Assembly (NCBI RefSeq): GCF_006345805.1
Contig: NW_021825901.1
Location: 1-13,981, forward strand
DNA from: Octopus sinensis
Taxonomy: Eukaryota
Direction of reading: 5' to 3'
Length of the DNA stretch: 13,981 nt
The notes beneath the pieces are model-generated. The model was not told the DNA's origin. It was given only the letters and a program-made list of their open reading frames with translations, and did no database searches. A program made the translations under genes and the position numbers. This document shows, piece by piece, positions 1-13,981 of this stretch (positions within the stretch are counted from its first letter, which is position 1; each line of letters starts with the position of its first letter).

Positions 1-190
1 ATGATGACGGAAGTGATGATGATGGTGATGATAATGGTGATGATGATGATGATGAAGAGGAATTAAGTTGATGACGACGACGATGATGATTGTGATGACG
101 ACGATGATGATGATGATGGTACTGGTGATGATGATGGTGATGATGATGATGATGATGATAACGACGGCGATGATGATGATGACGACGACA
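1..190. repeat. Degenerate (GAT)n trinucleotide microsatellite with GAC/GGT variants
   Basis: Directly visible GAT/GAC/GGT triplet run with phase slips. Confidence 0.95.
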
Positions 191-257
191 TTAATGGCTT
201 CTCGGTGATGGCGTGTGGTGGCCGCTGTATCGAAGGTTACCCTGGATAACGACGACA

Positions 258-360
258 ACAATAAACAAAAACAACGCGGAGATCAGACACACAGGAGCAA
301 CAAAGCAACAACAACAACAACAACAACAACAAAACAGCAGCAACAACGACAGCAACGATG
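258..360. repeat. (CAA)n microsatellite with degenerate flanks
   Basis: Pure CAA run at ~306-330; explains the poly-Q ORF 213..419. Confidence 0.9.
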
Positions 361-662
361 TCGATGACGTCAGCTACAGCATCAACAAGAACATGAAAAC
401 AAAGGTTCAAACCCCTTAAACAAAACAAAACAAAACTAAAGATAAAACGACCCCCCTCCCCCCACCCACAACAATTCGCAAAGGCAATACAACAAAGGAT
501 GTTATAAAAATTCCTCAAAGGCCTTCTCCCCGCCACCGCGCCCCCCCCCCACTTCAAGCCAATAAAAGCATCAGTGATCCTGTTGAAGTTTAATCCCCGC
601 TATTAACCACTCCTCCTCTGCACCTTTCACTCAATCCGACCCTTTGAGACCCCTAAACGAAG

Positions 663-669
663 ATTATTA

Positions 670-727
<58 letters not shown>
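663..727. repeat. (ATT)n microsatellite
   Basis: Near-perfect ATT run. Confidence 0.97.
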
Positions 728-800
728 CTTTCCGAGTCGGTGTTATGTAAAACTTTAGTGGCCTTTAACATCTGTTTGCGTAACAAAACATGCCGGCCGG

Positions 801-895
801 CTGTCTGTCTGTCTGCCTGTCTGTCTGCCTGTCTGTCTGTTTGTCTGTCTGGCTGGTTGGTTGGTCGGTAGGTCGGTCGGTTGGCTGGTTGGTTG
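801..895. repeat. Compound tetranucleotide repeat (CTGT)n-(TGGT/CGGT)n
   Basis: Directly visible. Confidence 0.92.
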
Positions 896-1203
896 GGAGA
901 AAGTGAAAGAAAAATACAGTTAACACGAAAGGTGCAGGATGAGCGCACATACTAAGCTTAGTGGCAGGCAATGAGTAACTGATCGATAGTCATAGTGAGA
1001 AAGATAAAAACATTTACCGTCTATTTTTCATTCCCTTCGAAGTTCATTCCTAATAGTGGTTTGGATTTCGGCTGTTCCTTCTAGCGTGTCAGGAATCCTG
1101 TGACGGATACCTCTTGTGTGTTAAAATGTATACTGTATTTAGATAGCTAGACAGATAGAATGCATGCGCGCGTGCATGCATTTGTATGTGTGAGAGTGTG
1201 TAA

Positions 1204-1204
<1 letters not shown>

Positions 1205-1234
<30 letters not shown>

Positions 1235-1266
1235 TGTATGTATGTATGTATGTATGTATGTATGTA
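1205..1266. repeat. (TATG)n microsatellite
   Basis: Perfect tetranucleotide run. Confidence 0.97.
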
Positions 1267-1539
1267 TATATATATTCGTACATATTTGTATATTCGCACT
1301 CGCTAGCACAGGCGCGCAAATACTAACATGCGGCATCATACACGCCCCTGCACGCGCAACATAGATTTTATTTCAATGTCGGTTGAACTCCGAATGCTTG
1401 TATGAGTCTTTCGACCAGAATTAGTTGCCGGTTTGAATGTCTGTTGTTGAAAAATGTGCGGAAGTTATCATAGAATGTCCTAATTGAGAAAGAAGATTAC
1501 GAGAAGACGAGAGAGAAAGCTAGAGAAATAACTATGCCT

Positions 1540-1652
1540 ATGTATGTATGTGTGTGTGTGTATACATATATATATATATGCATATATATATAGCATATGT
1601 ATATATAATATAATATATATATATAATATATATATATATATATGTGCATATC

Positions 1653-1701
<49 letters not shown>

Positions 1702-1797
1702 ATATTTATATATATATAGTATATACCTATCTTTCTATCTATCTATCTATCTATCTATCTCATCTATAGCATATAATTATATATATATATATATATA

Positions 1798-1849
<52 letters not shown>

Positions 1850-2010
1850 GAGAGAGAGAGAGAGAGAGAGAGATAGGCATATATGTATATATATGTATAG
1901 ACACAAACGCGCACACATGCACTGTCTCTGTCTGTCTGTCTCTCTCTCCTCTCACACACCACACAGATACACACACACATGCACACATATGTATATAAAC
2001 ACACACATGT
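1540..2010. repeat. Compound microsatellite field (TA)n/(CTAT)n/(GA)n/(CT)n/(CA)n
   Basis: Directly visible juxtaposed arrays. Confidence 0.95.
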
Positions 2011-2037
2011 ACGTGTATGTAATGCAGTGTGTGTTTT

Positions 2038-2130
2038 GGGCGGGCTGTAATATATAAAAGACTTGGCGGAAGAGGAAAGGAGTTATGTTGGGGAAAAACA
2101 GTACAGTTTTACGGAAGAATGGCGGTAAGT
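2038..2130 (+). promoter_or_regulatory. Candidate Pol II core promoter plus first exon ending ATG-GCG|GTAAGT
   Basis: GC box GGGCGGG 2038-2044, TATAAAAG 2053-2060, ATG at 2119 in AAGAATGGCGG (YY1-like), consensus donor GTAAGT 2125-2130. Motif co-occurrence only. Confidence 0.33.
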
Positions 2131-2176
2131 TATGTCGGGATATTATGTAAGACTCTCGCTGTAATCAGTCCCGAGT

Positions 2177-2227
2177 GTGAATAGTTTTGATACACACACA
2201 CACACACACACATATATATGTATACAT

Positions 2228-2278
<51 letters not shown>

Positions 2279-2480
2279 CAAACACACTAATATATAGATA
2301 CATATATATGCACCCACATACATAACCATTGACATACACATACACACATGCACTACACACAGACGCACGTACAGACACACACAGACGCACGTACAGACAA
2401 GTATGTATACAGATAGACACGCACACATATGTACACACATATACTCAACCATGAATATAACAAAGGACACACACACGTAT
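2177..2480. repeat. Compound (CA)n/(TA)n field containing an exact 22-bp tandem duplication
   Basis: ACACACAGACGCACGTACAGAC at 2355-2376 and 2377-2398. Confidence 0.9.
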
Positions 2481-2491
2481 GGTGATAACAT

Positions 2492-2530
2492 TGGTGCTGC
2501 TCCAGCAGGGCCATAGTCTTTGGGCTGAAC
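2492..2530 (+). mobile_element. Short remnant resembling the SINE family A 3' tail
   Basis: GGTGCTGCTCCAGCAGGGCCATAGTC..GCTGAAC aligns with GGTGCTCCAGCATGGCCATAGTC..ACTGAAAC at 3056-3092. Confidence 0.5.
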
Positions 2531-2633
2531 CGTATACATATCTATGGAATTGAATTTGTTTTCTTTCGGTTTTGATATAAAATCTGTTCACCACTTCAAG
2601 GAATCTATACACACATACATACATGCATACATA

Positions 2634-3113
2634 GGCGTAGGAGTGGATGTGTAGTAAGTAGCTTGCTTACGAACAACATGGGTCCGGGTTCGGCCCCACT
2701 GCGGGGTACCTTGGGCAAGTGTCTTCTACTATAGCCTCGGGCCAACCAAAGCCTTGTGAGTGGATTTGGTAGACAGAAACTGAAAGAAGCCCATTGTATA
2801 TATGTATATATATATATGTATGTGTGTGTATATGTTTGAGTGTCTGTGTTTTTCCCCCCCACCATCGCTTGACAGTCGATAGATATATATGTGTGTGTGT
2901 CTTTGTACTTGTGTTTGTAAACCCATCAACGCTTGACAACCGGTGCTGGTGTGTTTACGTCCTCGTAACATTAGCGGTTCGGCAAAAGAGACCGATAGAA
3001 TAGGTACTAGGCTTACAAAGAATATGTCCTGGGGTCGATTTGCTCGACTAAAGCCGGTGCTCCAGCATGGCCATAGTCAAAATGACTGAAACAAATAAAA
3101 GAGTAAAAGAGTA
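2634..3113 (+). mobile_element. Full-length tRNA-headed SINE (family A) with internal microsatellite linker and internal duplication
   Basis: tRNA-like head with B-box-like GGTTCGGCCCC 2687-2697; CCTTGGGCAAGT (CORE/V-SINE-like motif); (GAGTAAAA)n tail; homologous copies at 11255-11578 and 12921-13355. Confidence 0.88.
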
Positions 3114-3510
3114 CACACATACATACATATCTATTCGTGTGTGTGTGTGTGTGTCTGTCTGTGTGTAGAAGCTTATTTTCAGTTCGCAGGAGAGAAAGTG
3201 GATCTTGACGATGGATCCTTCATGGTCTGCCTTAAAGGAATATTTTAAAGCAAAATGCAGCGCAGTTTGTCTGTCTTTGTTTAACTCCAGCCCTATGAGT
3301 CATGCGCTTACAACGATAATTCCTACTTCTTAGCTGTTCTGTCAGTATTTACGCTTTGAAAAATATATCCTTCTGCTTGTTCTATATATTTTTCTGTAAT
3401 CTTATGTCTGATTTCTATTGTTCTTCGGCAGACTTCGTATTTATCACGCGGCCCAAAATAGGGAAAAGCTATATCCTATATTTTAGATAAATGACCAGTA
3501 TATCATATTC

Positions 3511-3726
3511 ATTTCTTTATTGCCCACAAGGGGCTAAACAGAGAGAGGACAGACAAAGGGATTAAGTCGATTACATCGACCCCAGTGCGAAACTGGTACT
3601 TTATTTATCGACACCGAAAGGATGAAAGGTAAAGTCGACCTCGGTGGAATTTGAACTCAGAACGTAACGACAGACGAAATACCGCTAAGCATTTCGCCTG
3701 GCGCGCTAACGTGTCTGCCATCTCGC
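3511..3726 (-). mobile_element. tRNA-headed SINE (family B) flanked by a perfect target-site duplication
   Basis: Reverse complement aligns with 9194-9392; B-box-like GAGTTCAAATTCC; CAGTATATCATATT at 3496-3509 and 3726-3739. Confidence 0.9.
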
Positions 3727-3790
3727 AGTATATCATATTGCTTTCAAAGCTGTATTATACAGCGTGGAATTCTTCATAAAAATGCACGGA

Positions 3791-4060
3791 TATTACTGCA
3801 GTTGATGTAACCGGAAGTGCTGCACCGGTTTATATAATACTTTTGCCGCCACCATTTTAATATTCTGCTTCAAACGCCTGAATATTGTTGCAGTTGACGT
3901 CACCGGAAGTCTCACCATGGATTATATAATATTTTGACTGACATAATTTCGGAATCCTTCATCAAATACGAGAACACTATTGCAGCTGATGTAAGCGGAA
4001 GTGTTGCAATAGATTTAGTAATACATTAACCGCCATTATTTTGCTGTAATAAATATTGTA
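3791..4060 (+). repeat. Degenerate tandem repeat, ~3 units, exact 92-bp period
   Basis: Core TGCAG(T/C)TGA(T/C)GT(A/C)A(C/G)CGGAAGT with the (C/G)CGGAAGT part at 3811, 3903 and 3995. Confidence 0.85.
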
Positions 4061-4380
4061 ATAATACATGAAAATCGCTGATGAGAAATATTGCCATAAA
4101 TAATGTTAACAATACACTTTAGCTGAATGTTTTCGCTAAAATGTTTTTGAGACTGTTCAAATGGAGGTCAATCTTTTAGTTTTCTCCTTCATTGTGTTTT
4201 TAGTTGTCAGATCTGGTCCGATGTATGCAGCATCGGATCTTACTACTGGTAAACTGTAAACCAGTACAACCTGTGTCAGTGGGGGTAGAAAGGGTTCCTT
4301 AGCCGTAGTGAAAGCAATCTGTCTAGGGAGATAACCTTACAATAAATCACTCAGTCCGTAGCTTAGAAATACTAGGTTGA

Positions 4381-4404
4381 TGTATATATATATATTTGTG
4401 TGTA

Positions 4405-4435
<31 letters not shown>

Positions 4436-4477
4436 TGTGTGTGTGTGTCTTTATGTCTGTGTTTGTCCCCCACCATC
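4381..4477 (+). mobile_element. SINE family A internal fragment (TA/TG linker plus TGTGTTTGTCCCCCACCATC)
   Basis: Matches 2845-2866 and 11388-11406. Confidence 0.65.
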
Positions 4478-4499
4478 ATTATTATTATTAGTGCCTTAC

Positions 4500-5424
4500 T
4501 AGTTGGGGCTGCCATGATTGTCAACGTGAACCTCACGAGGTACAAGTTCATCGTACCTGTCTATTACAAACACATGTCAAATCCATTCTGGAACAATATT
4601 CACTCAAGTATCGAAACAAAAACCCTTAACAATACTTCACAGCATAAACTATACAACGGAAATAGCCAGCCTAAGGAAAGCGAAAAGAAAATACTTCATT
4701 GAATATAAAGACCTATATAAGGATCCTCTATGTACCCACTAGATATACTACAGCTTTGTTTCATTGAGGAGGAAAGACCTTCTTTAGTGCTTGGTTGTAC
4801 AATGCTTTCCAATGTGTGTAGTAGCGGCGCGCGCACACATTATTAGCCATTTGAAAAGACTATGGAATTTACAATTAACTGCACCAGGGTTCCTCTTCCC
4901 CGGGGAACCAGACTTAATGGTATACCTGTGGATGTAGGTCCAGCCCTGCTTTGCCGGGTCCTATCTCTGATCACGTTTAGTTGCTATAAGCTAGGATTTA
5001 TTTGTTTCTTCTCTGGCCAAATCATCCTAGATTGAACTGGACTATGATCAAAACCTTCCAAGTCTTTCCTAGTATTTCAGATATTCTCTAACCGGAACGA
5101 CATTAACGAATGCATTCTGTCCCAGTTTTGAAATAATATAATGGGATGTTGAGGGAAATTTAGCTACTATTTGTAGTATATCTAGTGGGTACATAGAGGA
5201 TCCTTATATAGGTCTTTATATTTAAGGAAGTATTTTCTTTTCGCTTTCCTTAGGCTGGCTATTTCTGTTGTATAGTTTATGCTATGAAGTATTGTTAATG
5301 GTTTTTGTTTCGATACTTGAGTGAATAATGTTGGAGAATGGATTTGTCACGTGTTTGTAGTAGACAGGTACAATGAACTTGTACCTCGTGAGATTCACGT
5401 TGACAATCATTGCAGCCCCAACTA
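4500..5424. repeat. Long inverted repeat: 253-bp arms (4500-4752 and 5172-5424) around a 419-bp spacer
   Basis: Manual alignment gives 14 mismatches, no indels (~94.5% identity). Confidence 0.95.
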
Positions 5425-5512
5425 ATAATAGGGTCAATGATATCTTCGCAAATATTTTTCTCCTGAATTACTTGCTCCGTATTGAATATATATATATATA
5501 TAATATATATAT

Positions 5513-5676
5513 AAATATTGAATTTCTAAATTTCTCGTAGAGAATGTACGGTGGTGGGGCGATAGAATGGTTGTATACTGTCAATCTAACAAGAACGTGA
5601 CAGTAGGGGGTACACCACCGCTGTATAGCCCCACCACCGTACATGTCTCTACGAGAGATTTAGAAATTCAATATTT
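5513..5676. repeat. Hairpin with 48/49-bp arms (5513-5560 and 5628-5676) and a 67-nt loop
   Basis: Arms differ by one substitution and one indel. Confidence 0.93.
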
Positions 5677-5983
5677 CTTATTTTGATAATCAGTGAATAG
5701 ACTTCACTGAGTATAAATATATACAATTACGAAGTCGAGACAAATATCACCAGTTGACCGGTGTCTGCTACTCTAGGCCGATGAAGGACAACGATCCTGA
5801 AACACGTGTCCCTAGATGCAGTTTCGGCAGCCGGGGGTGTTTGTCTCCCCTCGTATATGATAAGGACACAGGGAAAAATGTGTCAAAAGCCATCAGGAGG
5901 CGTTCGATGCTTCCTAGGGCTATACAGCGGTGGTACCCCCCCTACTGTCACGTTCTTGTTAGATTGACAGTATACAACCATTC
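5565..5983 (+). mobile_element. Probable Penelope-like element pseudo-LTR remnant with an inverted copy of its end
   Basis: Contains a minimal hammerhead motif; 5917-5983 is the near-exact reverse complement of 5565-5631; no RT or GIY-YIG ORF seen. Confidence 0.62.
5765..5821 (+). ncRNA. Minimal type I hammerhead ribozyme motif (U4C core variant)
   Basis: Stem I TCTAGG 5772-77 / CCTAGA 5811-16; core CCGATGA 5778-84; stem II AGGA-caacga-TCCT 5785-98; GAAA 5799-5802; palindromic stem III ACACGTGT 5802-09; GUC triplet, predicted cut after 5810; stem I extended by CTGC 5765-68 / GCAG 5818-21. Confidence 0.8.
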
Positions 5984-6033
5984 CATATATATATATTATA
6001 TATATATTATATATATATATATATATAATATAT

Positions 6034-6082
6034 ATGGTGGGGGGGCAAACACAGATACAAAGACACACACACGCACATATAT
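6034..6082 (-). mobile_element. SINE family A internal fragment, inverted
   Basis: Reverse complement GTGTGTGTCTTTGTATCTGTGTTTGCCCCCCCACCAT matches 4441-4476. Confidence 0.6.
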
Positions 6083-6087
6083 GCACA

Positions 6088-6149
6088 CATGAGCAGGCTG
6101 TTCTGTTGATTGGTCCAACGGGAACCCTTGTCATCGTAACCGACGGAAT
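6088..6149 (+). mobile_element. Probable 3' fragment of another abundant SINE-like repeat (family C)
   Basis: GAGCAGGCTGTTCTGTTGATTGGTCCAACGGGAACCCTTGTCATCGTAAC resembles an octopus repeat as I recall it; single copy in this window, so not internally verifiable. Confidence 0.4.
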
Positions 6150-6458
6150 GCTTGATTATATCATGCGCACATGATATAATGCCTCACTTGCGTACTCACC
6201 AAGTAACGATTCCTTTATAAATAACGAAGGAAGTGTTTCCAAGAAGCCACTAAATCAGGTCTATGCTCAAAAATGTCAAAAGACTGCAACTGAATATAAT
6301 AACTCTCTGGAGTACCCAAGATGTTGCTGTGGATTAGCCTTTCGTTAGACCTTCCTTTATATAAAGAAAGCCGCCACAGCCATGACCATCAAGGATTTTT
6401 GTAGATATAATTCTGTGAAGCATAGCTACAGAATATGTTCCTTTTGAAGGTGATAAAA

Positions 6459-6643
6459 ATATTATTTAAAGATCATTTGGTTCCCATTCTGAGAGATCGA
6501 GAGGACATTCTCTCAAGCTGTCACCACGATATGTGATTTCTTTAGGTTTAGTAAATTTTTCCATTAATAAAATAAAATAAACCGTTTGGCCACACATAGT
6601 GGTTGCTAAATATGCGACCGTCAAGATTTGTACAGGATGTAAG
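6459..6643 (+). pseudogene. Possible decayed Gypsy/Ginger-type integrase zinc-binding (HHCC) fragment
   Basis: ILFKDHLVPILRDREDILSSCHHD, then a frameshift, then SLGLVNFSINKIK*TVWPHIVVAKYATVKICTGCK; G-x13-W and W-x13-C-x2-C spacing fits the integrase motif; second His lost. Confidence 0.4.
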
Positions 6644-6849
6644 TAATTATAAAATATAATTAAGTGATTGATTTTTTTTAAATATTCAATATATTGTGAT
6701 ATAATTGCTTCTACGTAATTCATTTTATCGATCTGCAATCGATGACAGAAAATAATTGCTACATCAACACACACATACACATTATTTTATACACGCACAC
6801 ATATACTCATACACACACATACACACGCATACACATCAGCAAGCTTACA

Positions 6850-7010
6850 ACAGACGCGGACATCTCCGTCCGTAATTCGTCGCTCGCGAAGAGAAACCAT
6901 GTGACTGACGCACGGTCTTGTTTTTCACTGCCGCCATTTTGGAGCGTTTCGTGCCGTGTGATGAGTTCATGGCTTACCACTGACGTCACACTCACAGATT
7001 CCGCAAACCA
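6850..7010 (-). promoter_or_regulatory. CpG-rich unique island with YY1 and CRE consensus sites
   Basis: About 16 CpG in ~160 bp; GCCGCCATTTTG 6930-6941; TGACGTCA 6981-6988; minus-strand GTAAGC donors at 6977 and 6848. Confidence 0.3.
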
Positions 7011-7016
7011 CCAACA

Positions 7017-7111
7017 GCACAACAACAACAACAACTACCACCACCACTACTACTACTACTACACTACTACTACTACTGCTGCTGCTGCTGTTGCTACTAC
7101 TACTACTACTA

Positions 7112-7178
<67 letters not shown>

Positions 7179-7197
7179 TTTGCTGCTGCTGCTGCTG

Positions 7198-7240
<43 letters not shown>

Positions 7241-7400
7241 CACTACTACTAAAAACGATAGTGCTACTTATACTCTACTATTACTACTATTTTTACAGCT
7301 GCTACTACAAATACTACTACTTCTACAACTACTCGACTCGTGCAACAACAACAACGACACCTACTACTACATCCATCATCATCACCAGCATCAGTAACCT
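7017..7400. repeat. Compound trinucleotide field (CAA)(CAC)(TAC)(TGC)(TAC)
   Basis: Directly visible; produces the poly-L/poly-T ORF 6742..7404. Confidence 0.95.
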
Positions 7401-7646
7401 GTAGTACCAATACTAATAGCATTGTCTTGCTGTTCGCATTGTTGCTGCTGTTTCTTTTGCTGTTGATGTTCGTTAGCATTTGCTGCTGGTGCTGTTTCCT
7501 TCTTCTGTTTACTGCTGCAAGGATTTTATTTTCTTCCCGTTCTTCATTCTTCGCTTTTCGTTCGCTTTTTTTTTCCTGCTTTTGTCTTCTTGTCTGTTTT
7601 GGCCAAATATTGTTTTGCCCTTCTCTTTCAATCCATCTCAATTTGA

Positions 7647-7780
7647 GTCTCTCTCTCTCTCTCTCTCTCTCTCCCTCCCTCCCTCTCTCCCTCCCCCTGT
7701 CTCTGTCTCTCTCCCTCTCCCTCGGTCTCTCTCTTTCTCCCTCGGTCTCTCTCTTTCTCCCTCGGTCTCTCTCTCTCTTT
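7647..7780. repeat. (CT)n-rich tract with a 20-bp minisatellite
   Basis: CTCGGTCTCTCTCTTTCTCC at 7721, 7741 and partially 7761. Confidence 0.9.
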
Positions 7781-7844
7781 CATTCTCTCTAACATTCTCT
7801 TCCGACACACGGAAACGCAAACACAGTCTCTTTAAATCTCTCTC

Positions 7845-7915
7845 TCACTCACGCACACACACACTTACATATACATACATACATACCTACCTACCTACCT
7901 ACATACATACATACA

Positions 7916-7948
<33 letters not shown>

Positions 7949-8091
7949 GTATACATGGATACACACATACATACATGCATACATACATATATATATGTAA
8001 ATATATATATATATGGAAATATATATATATATATGCATGCATGTTGTTATATATATATATATATATAATTTAATCCAAAGGAAAACAAAAA

Positions 8092-8144
<53 letters not shown>

Positions 8145-8145
8145 A
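7845..8145. repeat. Compound (CA)/(TACA)/(TACC)/(TA) field
   Basis: Directly visible. Confidence 0.93.
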
Positions 8146-8269
8146 TTAGTGTACATTTATGCACAAAAGACGTGACCTAACAGGACACCTTACATGCTAG
8201 AAGGAACAGTCAAAGTCCAAACCACTTTAATTTTCCTACCCTATATATTCTCTCTCTCTCTCTCTCTCC

Positions 8270-8735
8270 TCTGTATATATATATATATGTATTGTATGTA
8301 GGTCTATATATTTATACGGGTACACCTATAGAGGTTTCTCCTTCACCAACATTTCCACTCTCTTTCTCTCAGTACACACACACACACATTTATATATATA
8401 TGTGTATATACATAATGTTTATGCATGTAGGATGTATGCATATACTTATGTACATCTGTGTGTATATGTGTATGCTGGAGAAGCACATAATGGGGTGTAT
8501 ATGTGTCTGTACGTAGGTTTGTGTGTGTGTTCGCGTGCATGTATGTATATATATATAAACTCACAAAAACACTCATACACGTAAACGGGTACATATATAT
8601 ATATATTTATATTCACCTATACACATAAACGGGTATATATGTATATGTTCATATCCACCCCAGCATGCCTCTCCCTTTCTTTCTCTCTCTCTCTGTTCTC
8701 TCTCTCTCTCTCTCTCTATCTCTTTCTCTCTCTCT
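8270..8735. repeat. Degenerate (TA)/(TG)/(CT) field
   Basis: Directly visible. Confidence 0.85.
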
Positions 8736-9033
8736 AACCAAAATGTCTGTGAATATAGAATTTATTCTGTCTTTGAAGTTTCCCAAGCGGAAGCTAACCG
8801 AAACGAACTGTGTCAGCCTCACTCCATGATATTAGGAGAGGGAGGGGCACCTATTGAGCAAGGATGGCCAAGGTGACTGGTTGGTTGGTTGGAGGGGAGG
8901 GGGAATTGGTGTGATCTGAGGTGTGGTATATTGCGTTTTGAGCACGATATTTGGGGGAAAATGGGAGGGCGAACATCAGTCATTTTATTATTGTTGATGT
9001 TCTGATTATTACTCTTGTTGCTGTTGCTGTTGA

Positions 9034-9088
<55 letters not shown>

Positions 9089-9137
9089 GTCGTTGTTATT
9101 GATGCTGTTGTTGTGGATGATATCGATGTTGTTATTG

Positions 9138-9192
<55 letters not shown>
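9034..9192. repeat. (ATT)n arrays with degenerate GTT spacer
   Basis: Directly visible. Confidence 0.96.
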
Positions 9193-9193
<1 letters not shown>

Positions 9194-9392
9194 GGCGGCG
9201 AGCTGGCAGAATCGTTAGCACGCTGGACGAAATGCTTAGCGGCATTTCGCCCGTCGCTACGTTCTGAGTTCAAATTCCGCCGAGGTCGACTTTGTCTTTC
9301 GTCCTTTCGGGGTCGATAAAATAAGCACCAGTTCAACACGGGGATCGATTTAATAGACTCATTCTCATCTCCCCCGAGCTGCCCTTGTGAAA
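9194..9392 (+). mobile_element. Full-length tRNA-headed SINE (family B) embedded in (ATT)n
   Basis: Starts GGCGGCGAGCTGGCAGAATCG; B-box-like GAGTTCAAATTCC 9266-9278; homologous to 3511-3726. Confidence 0.9.
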
Positions 9393-9398
9393 TTATTA

Positions 9399-9438
<40 letters not shown>

Positions 9439-9447
9439 TATTATTAC

Positions 9448-9510
<63 letters not shown>
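9393..9510. repeat. (ATT)n array
   Basis: Near-perfect run. Confidence 0.97.
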
Positions 9511-9511
<1 letters not shown>

Positions 9512-9636
9512 TCCTTCGTTCTTCAAATTTTCTTCTGTTTCTCGCCGAAGTATTTTCCGTACACCAGGGGCAGAGAAGCTCATTGTATGCATTCCCAGAT
9601 TACACTCGCAAATTCACAGGTAAAATAGGTTACTTT

Positions 9637-9771
9637 GAAAAACTGTCGAACTATAAGGATCTTGAGATTGTGATATCTAGGACATGGCAATTAAAAACTC
9701 AAATCACCCCAGTTGTTTTAGGTGCCCTGGGAATGATTAAGAAACGTAGTGACAAATTTTTTGACCAGATC
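9637..9771 (+). mobile_element. Relic of a restriction-like endonuclease domain, R4/Dong-type non-LTR retrotransposon
   Basis: EKLSNYKDLEIVISRTWQLKTQITPVVLGALGMIKKRSDKFFDQI fits the K-x2-KY-x-DL...W...PVV-x-GALG motif of RLE-class elements. Confidence 0.75.
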
Positions 9772-10392
9772 TTGCTGTATTTTCTGCTACCCAAAGCCCA
9801 AATTTTACAGGGCTTAGAAAAACTGAAGGACTGCCGCAATAAGTGTGTGAATTTGAGAAGGGAATATGTTGACTAAAATCATAATTAACTGATCCTCCTA
9901 TATTTTGTTTTACCCAAAACCAAGAATTTTTACAGAGCTTAGAAAAACCGAAGGACTGCTGTAATAAGTATGTGAATCTGAGTGGGCATATTCTTTTATT
10001 CTTTTATTTGTTTCAGCTATATGACTGTGGTAATGCTGGAGTGTTGAAGAAAATCATAACTGATCCTCCTGGTAACATTTACGGGGCTTAGAAAGACTGA
10101 AGACTGTTGAAATATGTGTGTGATTTTGAGAGGAGAATATGTTGAATAAAATCATAATTAATTGATCCTCCTGTATTCCTCTTTACCCAAACCCAGAAAC
10201 TTTGACAGGGCTTAGAAAAAGTGAAAGACTGCTGCAATGAGTGTGTGAATCTAAGAGAATATGTTGAATAAAATCATAATTAACTGATCCTCCTATATTT
10301 TGTTTTACCCAAAACCAAGAATTTTTTCAGAGCTTAGAAAAACTGACCCTAACCCTAATACTCCTGTATTTTGTTTTACTAAAAGCTTAGAA
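9768..10392 (+). repeat. ~124-bp tandem satellite, about 5 units
   Basis: GCTTAGAA anchor at 9812, 9937, 10086, 10210, 10332 and partial 10385. Confidence 0.92.
9991..10041 (-). mobile_element. 51-bp SINE family A 3' tail inserted in the satellite
   Basis: Reverse complement matches 3060-3110; removing it restores GGGCATATGTTGAA, close to the satellite consensus. Confidence 0.8.
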
Positions 10393-10904
10393 CTTTTCTG
10401 CTCCTCCTTACACCTGTCAATCGATAATATATCGTCATTTGCAATGGAAAAGGCATCAAAACGATGATTACTTTCCGTCAAATTCGAACGCAAATACGCC
10501 AATCGCTGTTGTGATCGTCACAGGCGAACACGTCTTCCTTTACGGCGACTATGCGTTCACACCACACTCAGTTCGTTACTACGGTACGAATTGGTGATGC
10601 AAAGCAAAGAAAAAAGATAACAGATTTACCTGGTGTTAGATTTCTTTTAGAATCCGAAGCAATCTGGAGGAAATAGTAACTCTTACATCTGCTCGGAACA
10701 CTTCGCCATCTGCAGGAAATAGATTCTTTATCCTAAAATAAATAGAGGAAAAAAAAAAAAGGAAAACCAGAAATCTCTCTCTCAGGATTCAAGATGTATA
10801 TTCCGTAGTTCGATCCAATCTGCGGCTTAGTCATACAATTCATTATAATGTACATAGGTGGGTTTGCCAGCTACACATGTGGCCTTCACATGTGGCCTTC
10901 ACAT

Positions 10905-11254
10905 GTATACATACAAACACAAACACGCACGCATGCTCACAGTTATCTACATCAACTAACACATATTGTGTATACATACATACACACATACACTCATAAA
11001 CTCATATACATACACACGCTGATGTATATGTCTACATATGTATATATGTATGTATGTATATAATACATTTATACATATATATAATATATGTATATGTATA
11101 TATATATATAATGTAAATTATATATGTAATATATATGTATATATATATATATGTATAGATATATATAATGTATATATATATTATATATATATGTATATAT
11201 AAATAAATGTATATATATATATAATATATATAACATATATAATATATACTTATA
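10905..11254. repeat. Degenerate (CA)/(TA) field
   Basis: Directly visible. Confidence 0.88.
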
Positions 11255-11578
11255 TGTCTTCTGCTTTAGCCTCGAGCCGACCAAAGCATTTTGAGTGGAT
11301 TTGGTAGACGGAAACTGAAGAAGCCCGTCGTATATTTATATATATATTATGTGTGTGTGTGTCTGTGTGTGTGTAAGCATTTGTGTGTCTGTTTGTCCCA
11401 CACCATCGCTTCATAACCGATATTGGTCTGTTAGCGGTTCGTCAAAAGAGATCCGATAGGATAAGTACTACGCTTACGAAGAATAAGGCCTGGCATCGAT
11501 TTGTTTGACTAAAAGGCGGTGCTTCAGCATGGCCGCAGTCAAATTACTGAAACAAGTAAAAGAATAAGAATAAAAGAA
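11255..11578 (+). mobile_element. 5'-truncated SINE family A copy
   Basis: Collinear with 2720-3113, including linker and tail; lacks the internal duplication. Confidence 0.9.
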
Positions 11579-11840
11579 CACATACATATATGAGTCTGTG
11601 TGTGTGTCCTCACACACGAAGTGAGAATGGAACAGCTAATGAAGGAGTTCAACTCAAACCAGCACTTGAGTGAGAGTGGAGTCAATCATCTATTATACAT
11701 TTCATGGTGGGCGTGACTAGGTCATTGTTCTCATTCATGTCTGTATGCTTAATGTTCGAATTGTCAGCCGCACGACGTTGAAACAATTGTAAACAATGGA
11801 ATACATGCAATGTCAGTTACTCCGTTATTCATTTACTGCT

Positions 11841-11850
11841 TACATATGTG

Positions 11851-11936
<86 letters not shown>

Positions 11937-12166
11937 GTATGTGTGTGTACAGATGCACCTGCACTTACATACTACATATATATGCGTGTGTGTGTACATA
12001 TACACACACGCACGCAGACACAGATATATATATATATATATATACATATACCTCTCTGTGTGTTTGTGCGTGTGCATTTTCTTGCGTGCGCGTGTGTATA
12101 TTTGAGCGCGACTGCATCTGTGTATGTGTGTGTGTGTGTGTGTGTCTGTGTGTGTGTGTGTGTGTG
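11841..12166. repeat. Compound (TA)/(CA)/(TG) field
   Basis: Directly visible. Confidence 0.92.
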
Positions 12167-12283
12167 ATTCTTCAGACAGAATACATGTTGATACTTGATT
12201 GAAGAATGGATTTTAAACATCGATACGTGGGCAGGAAAAAAATAATGTTGACAGCGTGAGAGAAAGCGATATACAGATACAAG

Positions 12284-12284
<1 letters not shown>

Positions 12285-12360
<76 letters not shown>
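12285..12360. repeat. Perfect (GATA)19
   Basis: Uninterrupted 76-bp run. Confidence 0.97.
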
Positions 12361-12362
<2 letters not shown>

Positions 12363-12839
12363 GTGATAGAGAGAGGGATGGAGAGAGAATAAGAAAAACA
12401 AGAGAGGGTGAACTGAACGCAGAAAAGGAAGTAAGTGAACTAGGAACTCAGAAATAGCGGTTGGAATAAAAAAAAACCACAGAAAAATGGAATATCGCTG
12501 AATTTTATTTCCTTGTTTCTTTGTGTGTTTACGACAAGAGGGAACATTTTGGACCATAAAAAATATAACGAACGTCACGATTGTTTATGCAAATAGCTCT
12601 TGAGAAGTTGCACTTGAAGCCCTCTGAAAAAATAAAAAAAAGAAGTAAATAAATACATAAATAAATAAACATGCATGTATTGTGTAAAAAGTAGTGGAGA
12701 AGAAGGAAAGAAGGGAGAAATGGAAGCAGAATACAAAGCGTAGGGCAAATTCATGTAAGAAAAAATATCTTTTAAACTATTTTTTGATGTTTTTTTTAAA
12801 AATTCAAGTACTAGGCTATCAGTTTTTATGTGTGGGAAT

Positions 12840-12920
12840 CAGTCGATACCATCTACCAAAGCACTTGACTGGTACTTTATTTTATCGACCTAGAAAGGAT
12901 GAAAGAGAACATTGACCTCG
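12840..12920 (-). mobile_element. SINE family B central fragment
   Basis: ACTGGTACTTTATTTTATCGACCTAGAAAGGATGAAAG matches 3592-3628. Confidence 0.8.
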
Positions 12921-13085
12921 ATTGAAACTGGTTGGAAGCCCGTAATCTATCTATCTATATGTCTGTCTGTTCGTCCCACTGCTTGTCTGTTTGTCTGTCT
13001 GTGTGTCTGTCTGTTTGTCTACCTGTCCGTCCGTCCATCCGTCTATCTATTTATCTATTTCTCTGTCTGTCCGTCTATCTCTTTG

Positions 13086-13119
<34 letters not shown>

Positions 13120-13157
13120 GCCTGTCTATCTGTCTACTGGCTGTCTGTCTGTGTGTC

Positions 13158-13197
<40 letters not shown>

Positions 13198-13198
13198 C

Positions 13199-13234
<36 letters not shown>

Positions 13235-13355
13235 TCACCCATCTATTTATCTAAATGTGTGTGTGTGTGTCTTTTATCTTACGTTTTACCCAGCCCGCCC
13301 ACATCGCTTCACAGCCGTAACTTAGCGGTTCGGCCACAAGAGAAAAGTACAAGTG
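12921..13355 (+). mobile_element. Degenerate SINE family A fragment with linker expanded to ~330 bp of (CTGT)n/(CTAT)n
   Basis: GAAACTG..GAAGCCCGT upstream and CATCGCTTCACA..CGTAACTTAGCGGTTCGGC downstream match the family A linker flanks. Confidence 0.72.
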
Positions 13356-13451
13356 TTTGAAAAATTTTTATTTGAAATTCTTACCTTTCGAAAATTTTTC
13401 CTCCACGCCGAGACGACCAGTCCCATATCAATCACTTCTGGTCAGCTTCAC

Positions 13452-13543
13452 ATAGCCGACCTCGGCGGATTTTGGCTCAGAAAGTACGGCCGGTAGAAAT
13501 CCCACTAAGCCTTTTGCCTAGCGTGCTAAAGATTCTTCCAGCT
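13452..13543 (-). mobile_element. SINE family B tRNA-like head, diverged
   Basis: Reverse complement aligns with 9201-9295. Confidence 0.8.
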
Positions 13544-13550
13544 GAACACC

Positions 13551-13834
13551 AAGTGGTTAGGGTGTTTCACTCACGATCGCGGGATTGTGGTTTCAAGTCT
13601 TAGACCAGGTGCTGCGTGGTGTTCGTGAGCAAATCGCTTCCTCTCATAATGCTCTATGATCCCTGCAACACCCGACACGTGGTACACTGTTCCGGCAACG
13701 CCGATTTGATGGAGGGCGTGCGCTAATGTTCCGGCAGCAACATTTGATCATCATAAACAATTAATTCATTTGTGGAGGTCGTTCGGCAAAAGCTGAACGC
13801 TCATACGTCGCATTCCACGCGAGAGTCCGTCGTT
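13551..13834 (+). mobile_element. tRNA-headed SINE (family D), diverged
   Basis: AGTGGTTAGGGTG (A-box-like), GGTTTCAAGTC (B-box-like), degenerate V-like GTGAGCAA, followed by an AAT/GAA tail; single copy in window. Confidence 0.6.
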
Positions 13835-13868
13835 ATTATTAACAAGAACAACAATAATAATAATAAGT

Positions 13869-13981
13869 AGAAGAAGAAGAAGAAGAAGAAGATGAAGAAG
13901 AATTAGATGAAGAAGAAGAAGAATTAGAAAAATTAGATGAAGAAGAAGAAGAATTAGAAGAATTAGATGAAGAAGAAGAAG
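13869..13981. repeat. (GAA)n with a 30-bp higher-order unit, truncated by the window end
   Basis: AATTAGATGA at 13901, 13931 and 13961. Confidence 0.92.

Follow-up and report, generated by a model that had tools for sequence, protein, structure and literature searches.

The window analysed here is the whole 13,981-nucleotide (nt) stretch of Octopus sinensis contig NW_021825901.1 (assembly GCF_006345805.1, positions 1 to 13,981, forward strand), and its subject is a hammerhead ribozyme motif at 5765-5821 (+), which occupies positions 142-198 of a full-length 363-nt non-coding repeat unit at 5624-5986 (+). The motif, read directly from the sequence, is a type I hammerhead with an extension of stem I. 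The extension, CTGC (5765-5768) with GCAG (5818-5821), is separated by an internal loop of TAC (5769-5771, the UAC bulge) and T (5817) from a helix I of 6 base pairs (bp), TCTAGG (5772-5777) with CCTAGA (5811-5816). The core strand CCGAUGA (5778-5784; C3 C4 G5 A6 U7 G8 A9), with C4 (5779) instead of the canonical U4, is followed by the 4-bp helix II, AGGA (5785-5788) with TCCT (5795-5798), which has A10.1-U11.1 at its foot and the 6-nt loop 2, CAACGA (5789-5794), between its strands. GAAA at 5799-5802 provides G12, A13, A14 and A15.1, and helix III is formed by the self-complementary 8-nt ACACGTGT (palindrome ACACGUGU, 5802-5809), which as a hairpin has the pairs A15.1-U16.1 and C15.2-G16.2 and the loop ACGU. 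The motif is completed by GUC (5808-5810), in which C17 is 5810 and the predicted cut falls at 5810/5811.

The order of the three helices is that of type I, with helix I open and helices II and III closed, and every core position (C3 to A9, G12 A13 A14, A15.1-U16.1 and H17) is canonical except position 4, which is C throughout the family. A preliminary description made from the sequence alone had listed the type I elements, and each was recovered base for base where it had been placed, as were the two features it had singled out as odd, C at position 4 and A-U at the foot of stem II. Its label "minimal" is inexact, because the motif, with helices I, II and III of 6, 4 and 2 bp, a 6-nt loop on helix II, a palindromic tetraloop on helix III and the UAC bulge, matches the canonical animal type I build (PMC4209133) and not the stripped-down minimal hammerhead ribozyme (min-HHR) found in the pseudo-long terminal repeats (pLTRs) of Penelope-like elements (PLEs).

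The motif was assessed with a descriptor that asked for CUGANGA (one mismatch allowed), GAAA and H17, together with a helix I of 5 bp or more, a helix II of 4 bp or more and a short helix III. With both strands of the 14-kb window scanned, the hammerhead site at 5765-5821 was the one match, and 300 dinucleotide-preserving shuffles of the window gave none. A rough analytic estimate places the chance rate at about 5e-9 per position, or a few tens of matches in the 2.7-Gb genome (5.4 Gb over two strands). Rfam returned nothing at gathering score for the whole window and nothing at E<=10 for 301 nt around the motif, and for 67 nt the best of 4227 families was Hammerhead_1 (RF00163), the model aligning over positions 1-45 of 45 to 5772-5816 in the expected structure. 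The score was 14.3 bits (E 0.38 for the 67 nt) against a gathering score of 34 bits; since a family copy decayed to CTGATGA reaches just 17.4 bits, C4 accounts for only about 3 bits of the shortfall.

The site could in principle be a look-alike, a repeat sequence that happens to fit a relaxed descriptor with one core mismatch, and the sub-threshold Rfam score, the few tens of matches predicted by the estimate and the very many windows scanned all favour this. The motif alone would not suffice to exclude a chance origin, and it is the repeat-family context that does so: the family carries PLE insertion scars, homologous older families have a canonical core and compensatory helix changes, and the helix III segment GAAACACGUGUC of the window is one base off the GAAACAUGUGUC of bona fide Rfam-scoring hammerheads in the same genome. 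With the empty shuffles added, coincidence is a very improbable explanation.

Repeat unit and insertion structure

The genome searched comprises 13,516 contigs with a total of 2.7 Gb. The 121 bases surrounding the motif gave more than 1037 candidate matches, the 40 scored ones being 96-98% identical, and mapping of the window onto 29 loci gave contiguous matches of about 363 nt at 92-97% identity, by which the bounds of the unit were set. The unit (family F1) has a G+C content of 44.4%, carries one hammerhead motif and contains no meaningful open reading frame (ORF), the sole ORF across it being a mechanical one of 112 amino acids (aa) started by TTG. The motif is a hammerhead-ribozyme descendant in a young, roughly 1000-copy, non-coding mobile repeat.

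In the window the unit adjoins, head to head, an inverted 5'-truncated copy at 5513-5631 (-), located by self-BLAST of the unit on the window. This copy consists of unit positions 294-363 (5562-5631) followed by a tail of unit positions 1-53 (5513-5564), and its 3' end points outward into a (TA)n microsatellite, an arrangement also seen at many other loci. The target flanks, read directly, are (TA)n at 5486-5512 on the left and 5987-6035 on the right, and the window holds a single sense motif only. At the other loci copies are 5'-truncated, most of the 29 loci are flanked by (TA)n or other microsatellites, and full copies often have the last tens of bases of another unit before them as partial tandems. 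A 58-nt tail, that is, extra unit positions 1-58 after position 360/363, is present at one outer end only. Orientation was taken from a position-ordered list of the first 100 of 363 motif copies with exact flanks; within these, all 13 close inverted pairs are "- then +", or head to head with 3' ends outward, and seven tandem pairs are spaced by 363-366 nt, the arrays being short.

For PLE insertions the literature describes a preference for microsatellites, partial tandems, a neighbouring 5'-truncated copy in inverted orientation and a tail on one side only (PMC8557442); both DNA strands are cut and extended at AT-rich targets, and two internal start sites of reverse transcription explain the tail (PMC11167929). 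The element was inserted in (TA)n as two head-to-head arms with a one-sided tail, and this layout is the footprint of a PLE reverse transcriptase (RT)/GIY-YIG endonuclease acting on both DNA strands. The preliminary description had proposed a self-cleaving retroelement RNA family, and the retroelement part of that proposal is borne out by these Penelope-type scars and by the retrozyme-like units.

PLE enzymes are plentiful in the genome, given that more than 5000 GIY-YIG candidates with open frames of up to 883 aa were found. Many of the candidates score identically, with open frames 781-883 aa long, suggesting PLEs that are young and possibly active. Hammerhead pairs about 4 kb apart (L044, L045) were considered as an autonomous partner and set aside; the ORFs they enclose are unrelated, with zinc-knuckle traces only and no RT.

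Core variant and relatives in the genome

Among the first loci, CCGATGA was present in 38 of 39 motif copies and CCAATGA in the remaining one. A core census with exact flanks and seven free core positions found the 363 copies mentioned above, and the first 100, when read, comprised 84 CCGATGA, 7 CTGATGA, 4 CCAATGA and 5 other cores. As CCGA contains a CpG, CTGATGA and CCAATGA are readily understood as its two deamination products, formed at similar rates. In two cases CTGATGA is carried by both members of a tandem or inverted pair, so CTG-bearing RNA was also mobilised at least occasionally.

The preliminary description had offered a family-wide core variant and a single decayed copy as alternatives. 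The latter supposes that the family reads CUGAUGA and that the window copy alone mutated, for which the 7 CTGATGA copies could be cited. It is ruled out by the counts of 84 in 100 and 38 in 39, by the core CCGAYGA of a second subfamily (F2) and by the similar rarity of CTGATGA and CCAATGA, as CpG decay of CCGA predicts, and is hardly credible. CCGAUGA is family-wide, the remaining copies fitting CpG decay, and U4-to-C is fixed in the two youngest subfamilies, F1 and F2. A literature search for CCGAUGA as a natural hammerhead core found nothing relevant.

F2 was reached through contigs of sequencing runs. The run data are Logan contigs, which give coverage only, without starts, ends or strand, and the runs are RNA by guess and may include DNA. 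Part of the sequence was also found in several other organisms. Contigs from three runs share just 5756-5821 with the window and led to a single-copy fragment (L043), from which F2 was found; it is about 88% identical to the window unit over the whole length. The L043 fragment itself (L043:1515-1580, -; genome C29:12718121-12718148) is a 66-nt F2-type hammerhead module 94% identical to 5756-5821, differing from the window copy by U7C, by two bases of loop 2 and by a C-to-U change that creates a G.U pair in helix I. At its single-copy locus it is flanked on both sides by ATTTTCTATAG, and contigs of 197-579 nt in three putative RNA runs cover it.

Fixation of C4 raises a serious rival to a working ribozyme: the U4-to-C change on the F1/F2 stem may have ended useful self-cleavage and left an inactive relic, a fossil that hitch-hikes in a still-mobile element whose spread continued since Penelope-like reverse transcription needs just the 3' recognition region and the tail. 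This explanation is plausible, if not the favoured one, and the comparison of the subfamilies bears on it in both directions. Between 40 F1 and 13 F2 copies there are 20 fixed differences, three of them in the hammerhead, namely U7-to-C (5782) and loop-2 positions 4 and 5 (5792, 5793). All three arose after the C4 change and stand at sites that hammerheads tolerate, a placement expected in roughly 1-2% of cases if random, and the perfect 8-nt palindrome, the UAC bulge and the CAAxxA loop (C-A-A-x-x-A kept around the two variable positions) are intact in both F1 and F2, all of which speaks against a relic. On the other side, the density of fixed differences in the hammerhead (0.045/nt) is not below that of the rest of the unit (about 0.055), so the argument for constraint is one of placement only, at three sites, and conservation within the unit is highest at the 3' end and in the tail, not in the hammerhead.

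A more distant relative (L060) was one of only 3 matches to a pattern search for other forms of helix II, in which G10.1-C11.1 was combined with an unchanged loop and helix III. The L060 unit shares 71-76% identity with the window unit and belongs to a family with 2475 candidates; its helix I has a shortened 3' strand. The full 53-nt L060 motif with up to 3 mismatches matched L060 alone in its own genome. A superfamily anchored on the L060 5' strand has at least 468 copies of the form GCUAC-UCCAGA-CUGAUGA-xGAG-CAAxxA-CUCx-GA, all with canonical U4. Its helix II is AGAG/CUCU and its helix I UCCAGA/UCUGGA, and positions 10.1/11.1 are, by subfamily, A-U, U.U, C.A, U-A or G.U. The A-U closing pair of stem II, which the preliminary description had taken as unusual, is therefore ordinary within this wider superfamily, and U.U at the foot of helix II is known from the axolotl retrozyme HHR_Amex2 (PMC7229834). 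A variable-gap search for the 3' half, GAAAC-UA-GUC-UCUGGA-UGCAG, found two copies; at a fixed 6-nt spacing the 3' strand of the older family matched only CpG-decayed F1/F2 copies.

The helices have changed by compensation. In helix I, two of six pairs are doubly changed between F1 and the superfamily (U-A for C-G and G-C for A-U), one of them on a real locus, L060, and in helix II two pairs are compensatory relative to L060 and the superfamily, giving four compensatory pairs in all, a small sample, between the window family and the superfamily strings. When only the real loci (F1, F2, L043, L060) are compared, both sides are changed in 3 pairs and pairing holds in 96.6% of cells, a result reached by 1 of 500 shuffles. 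Stem covariation among genomic copies, the absence of which the preliminary description had named, together with a lack of cleavage, as counting against the motif, is present in this small sample. The UAC bulge, CAAxxA loop, GAAA, palindromic helix III and C17 are kept throughout the comparison. Because the older relatives have CUGAUGA and the helices changed by compensation, C4 is derived on the F1/F2 stem within a lineage of conserved fold, and the ancestry of the window hammerhead lies in a hammerhead lineage of this genome with the canonical CUGAUGA. Compensatory changes that maintained the helices up to the F1 ancestor are a further point against a relic. In its favour, half of the copies in the older superfamily have a mismatch at 10.1/11.1, which may mean loose selection on the ribozyme in that lineage, and the helix I strand of L060 is shortened as noted.

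Other hammerheads and hammerhead-like motifs are also present in the genome. A separate older repeat family (L031-L042, e.g. L036/L037 at C16:25146363 and 25146794) has type I hammerheads that score up to 48 bits in Rfam and read GUAC-CUGAAGAG...GAAACAUGUGUC-GUAC, with two tandem copies 431 nt apart at one locus; no homology of these repeats to the window unit was found beyond the motif itself. An unrelated hammerhead-like motif with the C4 core CCGACGA lies about 1.3 kb from a GIY-YIG ORF fragment (L067, -, reverse-complement positions 139-240); its helix II has 3 bp and a GGAA loop, GAAA and A17 are present, and the motif caps an approximately 36-bp hairpin beside a (TA)n run.

Predicted folding, activity and related elements

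The preliminary description had proposed that the palindromic stem III allows a dimer, and cofolding agrees with this. For two 57-mers the minimum-energy structure (-37.7 kcal/mol, compared with 2 x -14.0 or -28.0 for the monomers) is a double hammerhead in which the two molecules share an 8-bp helix III and exchange their helix I strands. Monomers from cleavage site to cleavage site measure 347-365 nt in the loci, and those taken from real tandem copies and folded as circles have z scores of -4.8 to -8.4 against shuffles, with a long closed stem and side branches; this predicted fold resembles those of retrozyme and viroid-like RNAs.

Contigs of four runs cover the unit and its 363-to-1 junction, which also occurs in genomic DNA. 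The sole joint in the contigs is an opposite-strand join between the two arms (5584/5934), seen in a single contig. Over 5713-5755 the contigs of the four runs differ from the window copy by A>G at 5713, 5716, 5740, 5743, 5749 and 5752 and by T>C at 5754 and 5755. RNA editing was set aside as an explanation of the A>G cluster; it is indistinguishable from variation among copies or subfamilies, and 5749 is a fixed F1/F2 difference.

The favoured reading, which we hold with middling confidence, is that a young, non-coding retrozyme of 363 nt, lacking long terminal repeats (non-LTR) and derived as a non-autonomous element from PLEs, has this motif as its hammerhead, and that the hammerhead is active but probably weak. 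The cycle proposed is modelled on published retrozyme and PLE models. Transcripts through two tandem units would pair their palindromic ACACGUGU segments into a double hammerhead, in which each site would cut after C5810, probably slowly and perhaps only with the help of protein. Cleavage would release 363-nt monomers with 5'-OH and 2',3'-cyclic phosphate ends, which would fold into a very stable branched rod and could be ligated into circles, and autonomous PLEs would copy the monomer RNAs back into AT-rich microsatellites.

Several points weigh against an active ribozyme of this kind, in addition to the low Rfam score, the undiminished density of F1-F2 differences in the motif and the mismatches at 10.1/11.1 in older relatives. 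The superfamily 3' strand of helix I is known from two identical copies. At 10.1-11.1 the pair is A-U, where G-C is usual. Contigs of the runs guessed to be RNA pass straight across 5810/5811. Comparison of the unit with 20 GIY-YIG loci (+/-1.5 kb) revealed no similarity, so that no specific autonomous partner is linked to it. The core substitution itself has a natural counterpart in a viroid, the hammerhead of which has type III topology. There, as cited by Perreault et al. 2011 (PMC3088659, their reference 30), U4C is reported to make activity in vitro considerably lower and yet still to support infectivity in vivo. The viroid variant has the same single core substitution and was sufficient in vivo, but it belongs to an RNA replicon quasispecies, whereas C4 in the window family is fixed in a thousand-copy genomic retroelement family of an animal. 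PLE insertion in vitro is unaffected by catalytic mutations of the hammerhead, and in Anolis no reads were found to end at the hammerhead site (PMC11167929).

These results also support the relic, which stays a serious rival because U4C weakens activity in vitro and PLE insertion in vitro dispenses with cleavage. Penelope min-HHRs are in any case poor cleavers in vitro (PMC4209133), and Penelope hammerheads more widely cleave poorly or only with protein (PMC11167929, PMC4209133). The reported function of a U4C hammerhead in vivo (PMC3088659) stands against the relic and in favour of the weak ribozyme. A stronger claim, that the C4 hammerhead is catalytically competent in vivo as a lineage-specific alternative core, fixed in the youngest and most successful retrozyme subfamilies, is rather doubtful. 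If true, it would be the first animal hammerhead lineage without the U of the uridine turn, and an active C4 would imply compensation by tertiary contacts, dimer formation or a Penelope protein chaperone; recurrence of C4 in unrelated families, for which the L067 motif is one candidate, would add weight to it.

The window family most closely invites comparison with the metazoan non-LTR retrozymes (PMC7229834; preprint 10.64898/2026.07.22.740005), which have non-coding units of about 170-400 nt and low G+C, a range into which the 363-nt unit with 44% G+C (below 45%) fits. Shared features are a single type I hammerhead in each unit (helices I, II and III of 6, 4 and 2 bp, the last capped by a palindromic tetraloop), weak pairs at the foot of helix II (U.U in HHR_Amex2), head-to-tail copies, a monomer predicted to be very stable as a circle, and coexistence with many PLEs. 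In contrast to those retrozymes, the window family has C4 throughout and not U4, and occurs mostly as dispersed insertions of 1-3 units with an inverted arm and not as long tandem arrays; its circular RNA and self-cleavage are predictions. A literature search on such elements found none named in cephalopods.

With the hammerheads of PLE pLTRs (PMC4209133, PMC11167929, PMC8557442) the family shares AT-rich or microsatellite targets, partial tandems, an inverted 5'-truncated neighbour, a tail confined to one end, predicted action as a dimer through a palindromic helix III and an expectation of low or protein-assisted activity. It differs from PLE pLTR elements by the canonical type I motif with loops in place of a stripped min-HHR, by a unit without an RT/GIY-YIG ORF, by a tail of 58 nt compared with 30-40 nt, and by having no sequence link to any particular autonomous PLE among the 20 GIY-YIG loci compared. 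As animal retrozymes and PLE-borne hammerheads have already been described, the window family is an added member of the animal non-LTR retrozymes/non-autonomous PLEs and not a new kind of element.

The motif also resembles Schistosoma mansoni Sm1/N79 (PMC12550524) in the order of its parts, in helix sizes, in a UAC-containing 5' bulge before a 6-bp helix I, in a 4-bp helix II with a 6-nt loop C-A-A-x-x-A and in an extension of the GCAG/CUGC type past the bulge. It differs in having C4 and not U4, A10.1-U11.1 and not G-C, and a palindromic helix III that is natural and 2 bp long, the helix III of N79 being long and engineered. The likeness is one of sequence only.

The interest of the family is that it provides a natural experiment, in which two young subfamilies with more than 1000 copies carry the U4C change that cripples model hammerheads and older relatives still have the canonical core. 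Should C4 transcripts fail to cleave, self-cleavage would be dispensable for Penelope-mediated amplification in vivo, an extension of what Frangieh et al. 2024 (PMC11167929) found in vitro. If they do cleave, they would show the extent of variation that a natural ribozyme tolerates in its uridine turn.

Other repeats in the window

Just upstream of the retrozyme insertion, a 257-nt inverted repeat (4496-4752 and 5172-5428) is 94% complementary with 419 nt between the arms; it may be a foldback element, a miniature inverted-repeat transposable element (MITE) or another head-to-head insertion. A pair of inverted repeats of 167 nt (3560-3726 and 9198-9364), 83% complementary and 5.5 kb apart, probably represents two copies of another dispersed repeat. 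At 9829-10377 a 154-nt segment is present in three direct copies with 82% and 65% identity and spacings of 273 and 122 nt. Immediately to the right of the insertion, 6106-6167 has a summed contig depth of about 2600-6700 in all four runs, which indicates another very abundant repeat or transcript segment.

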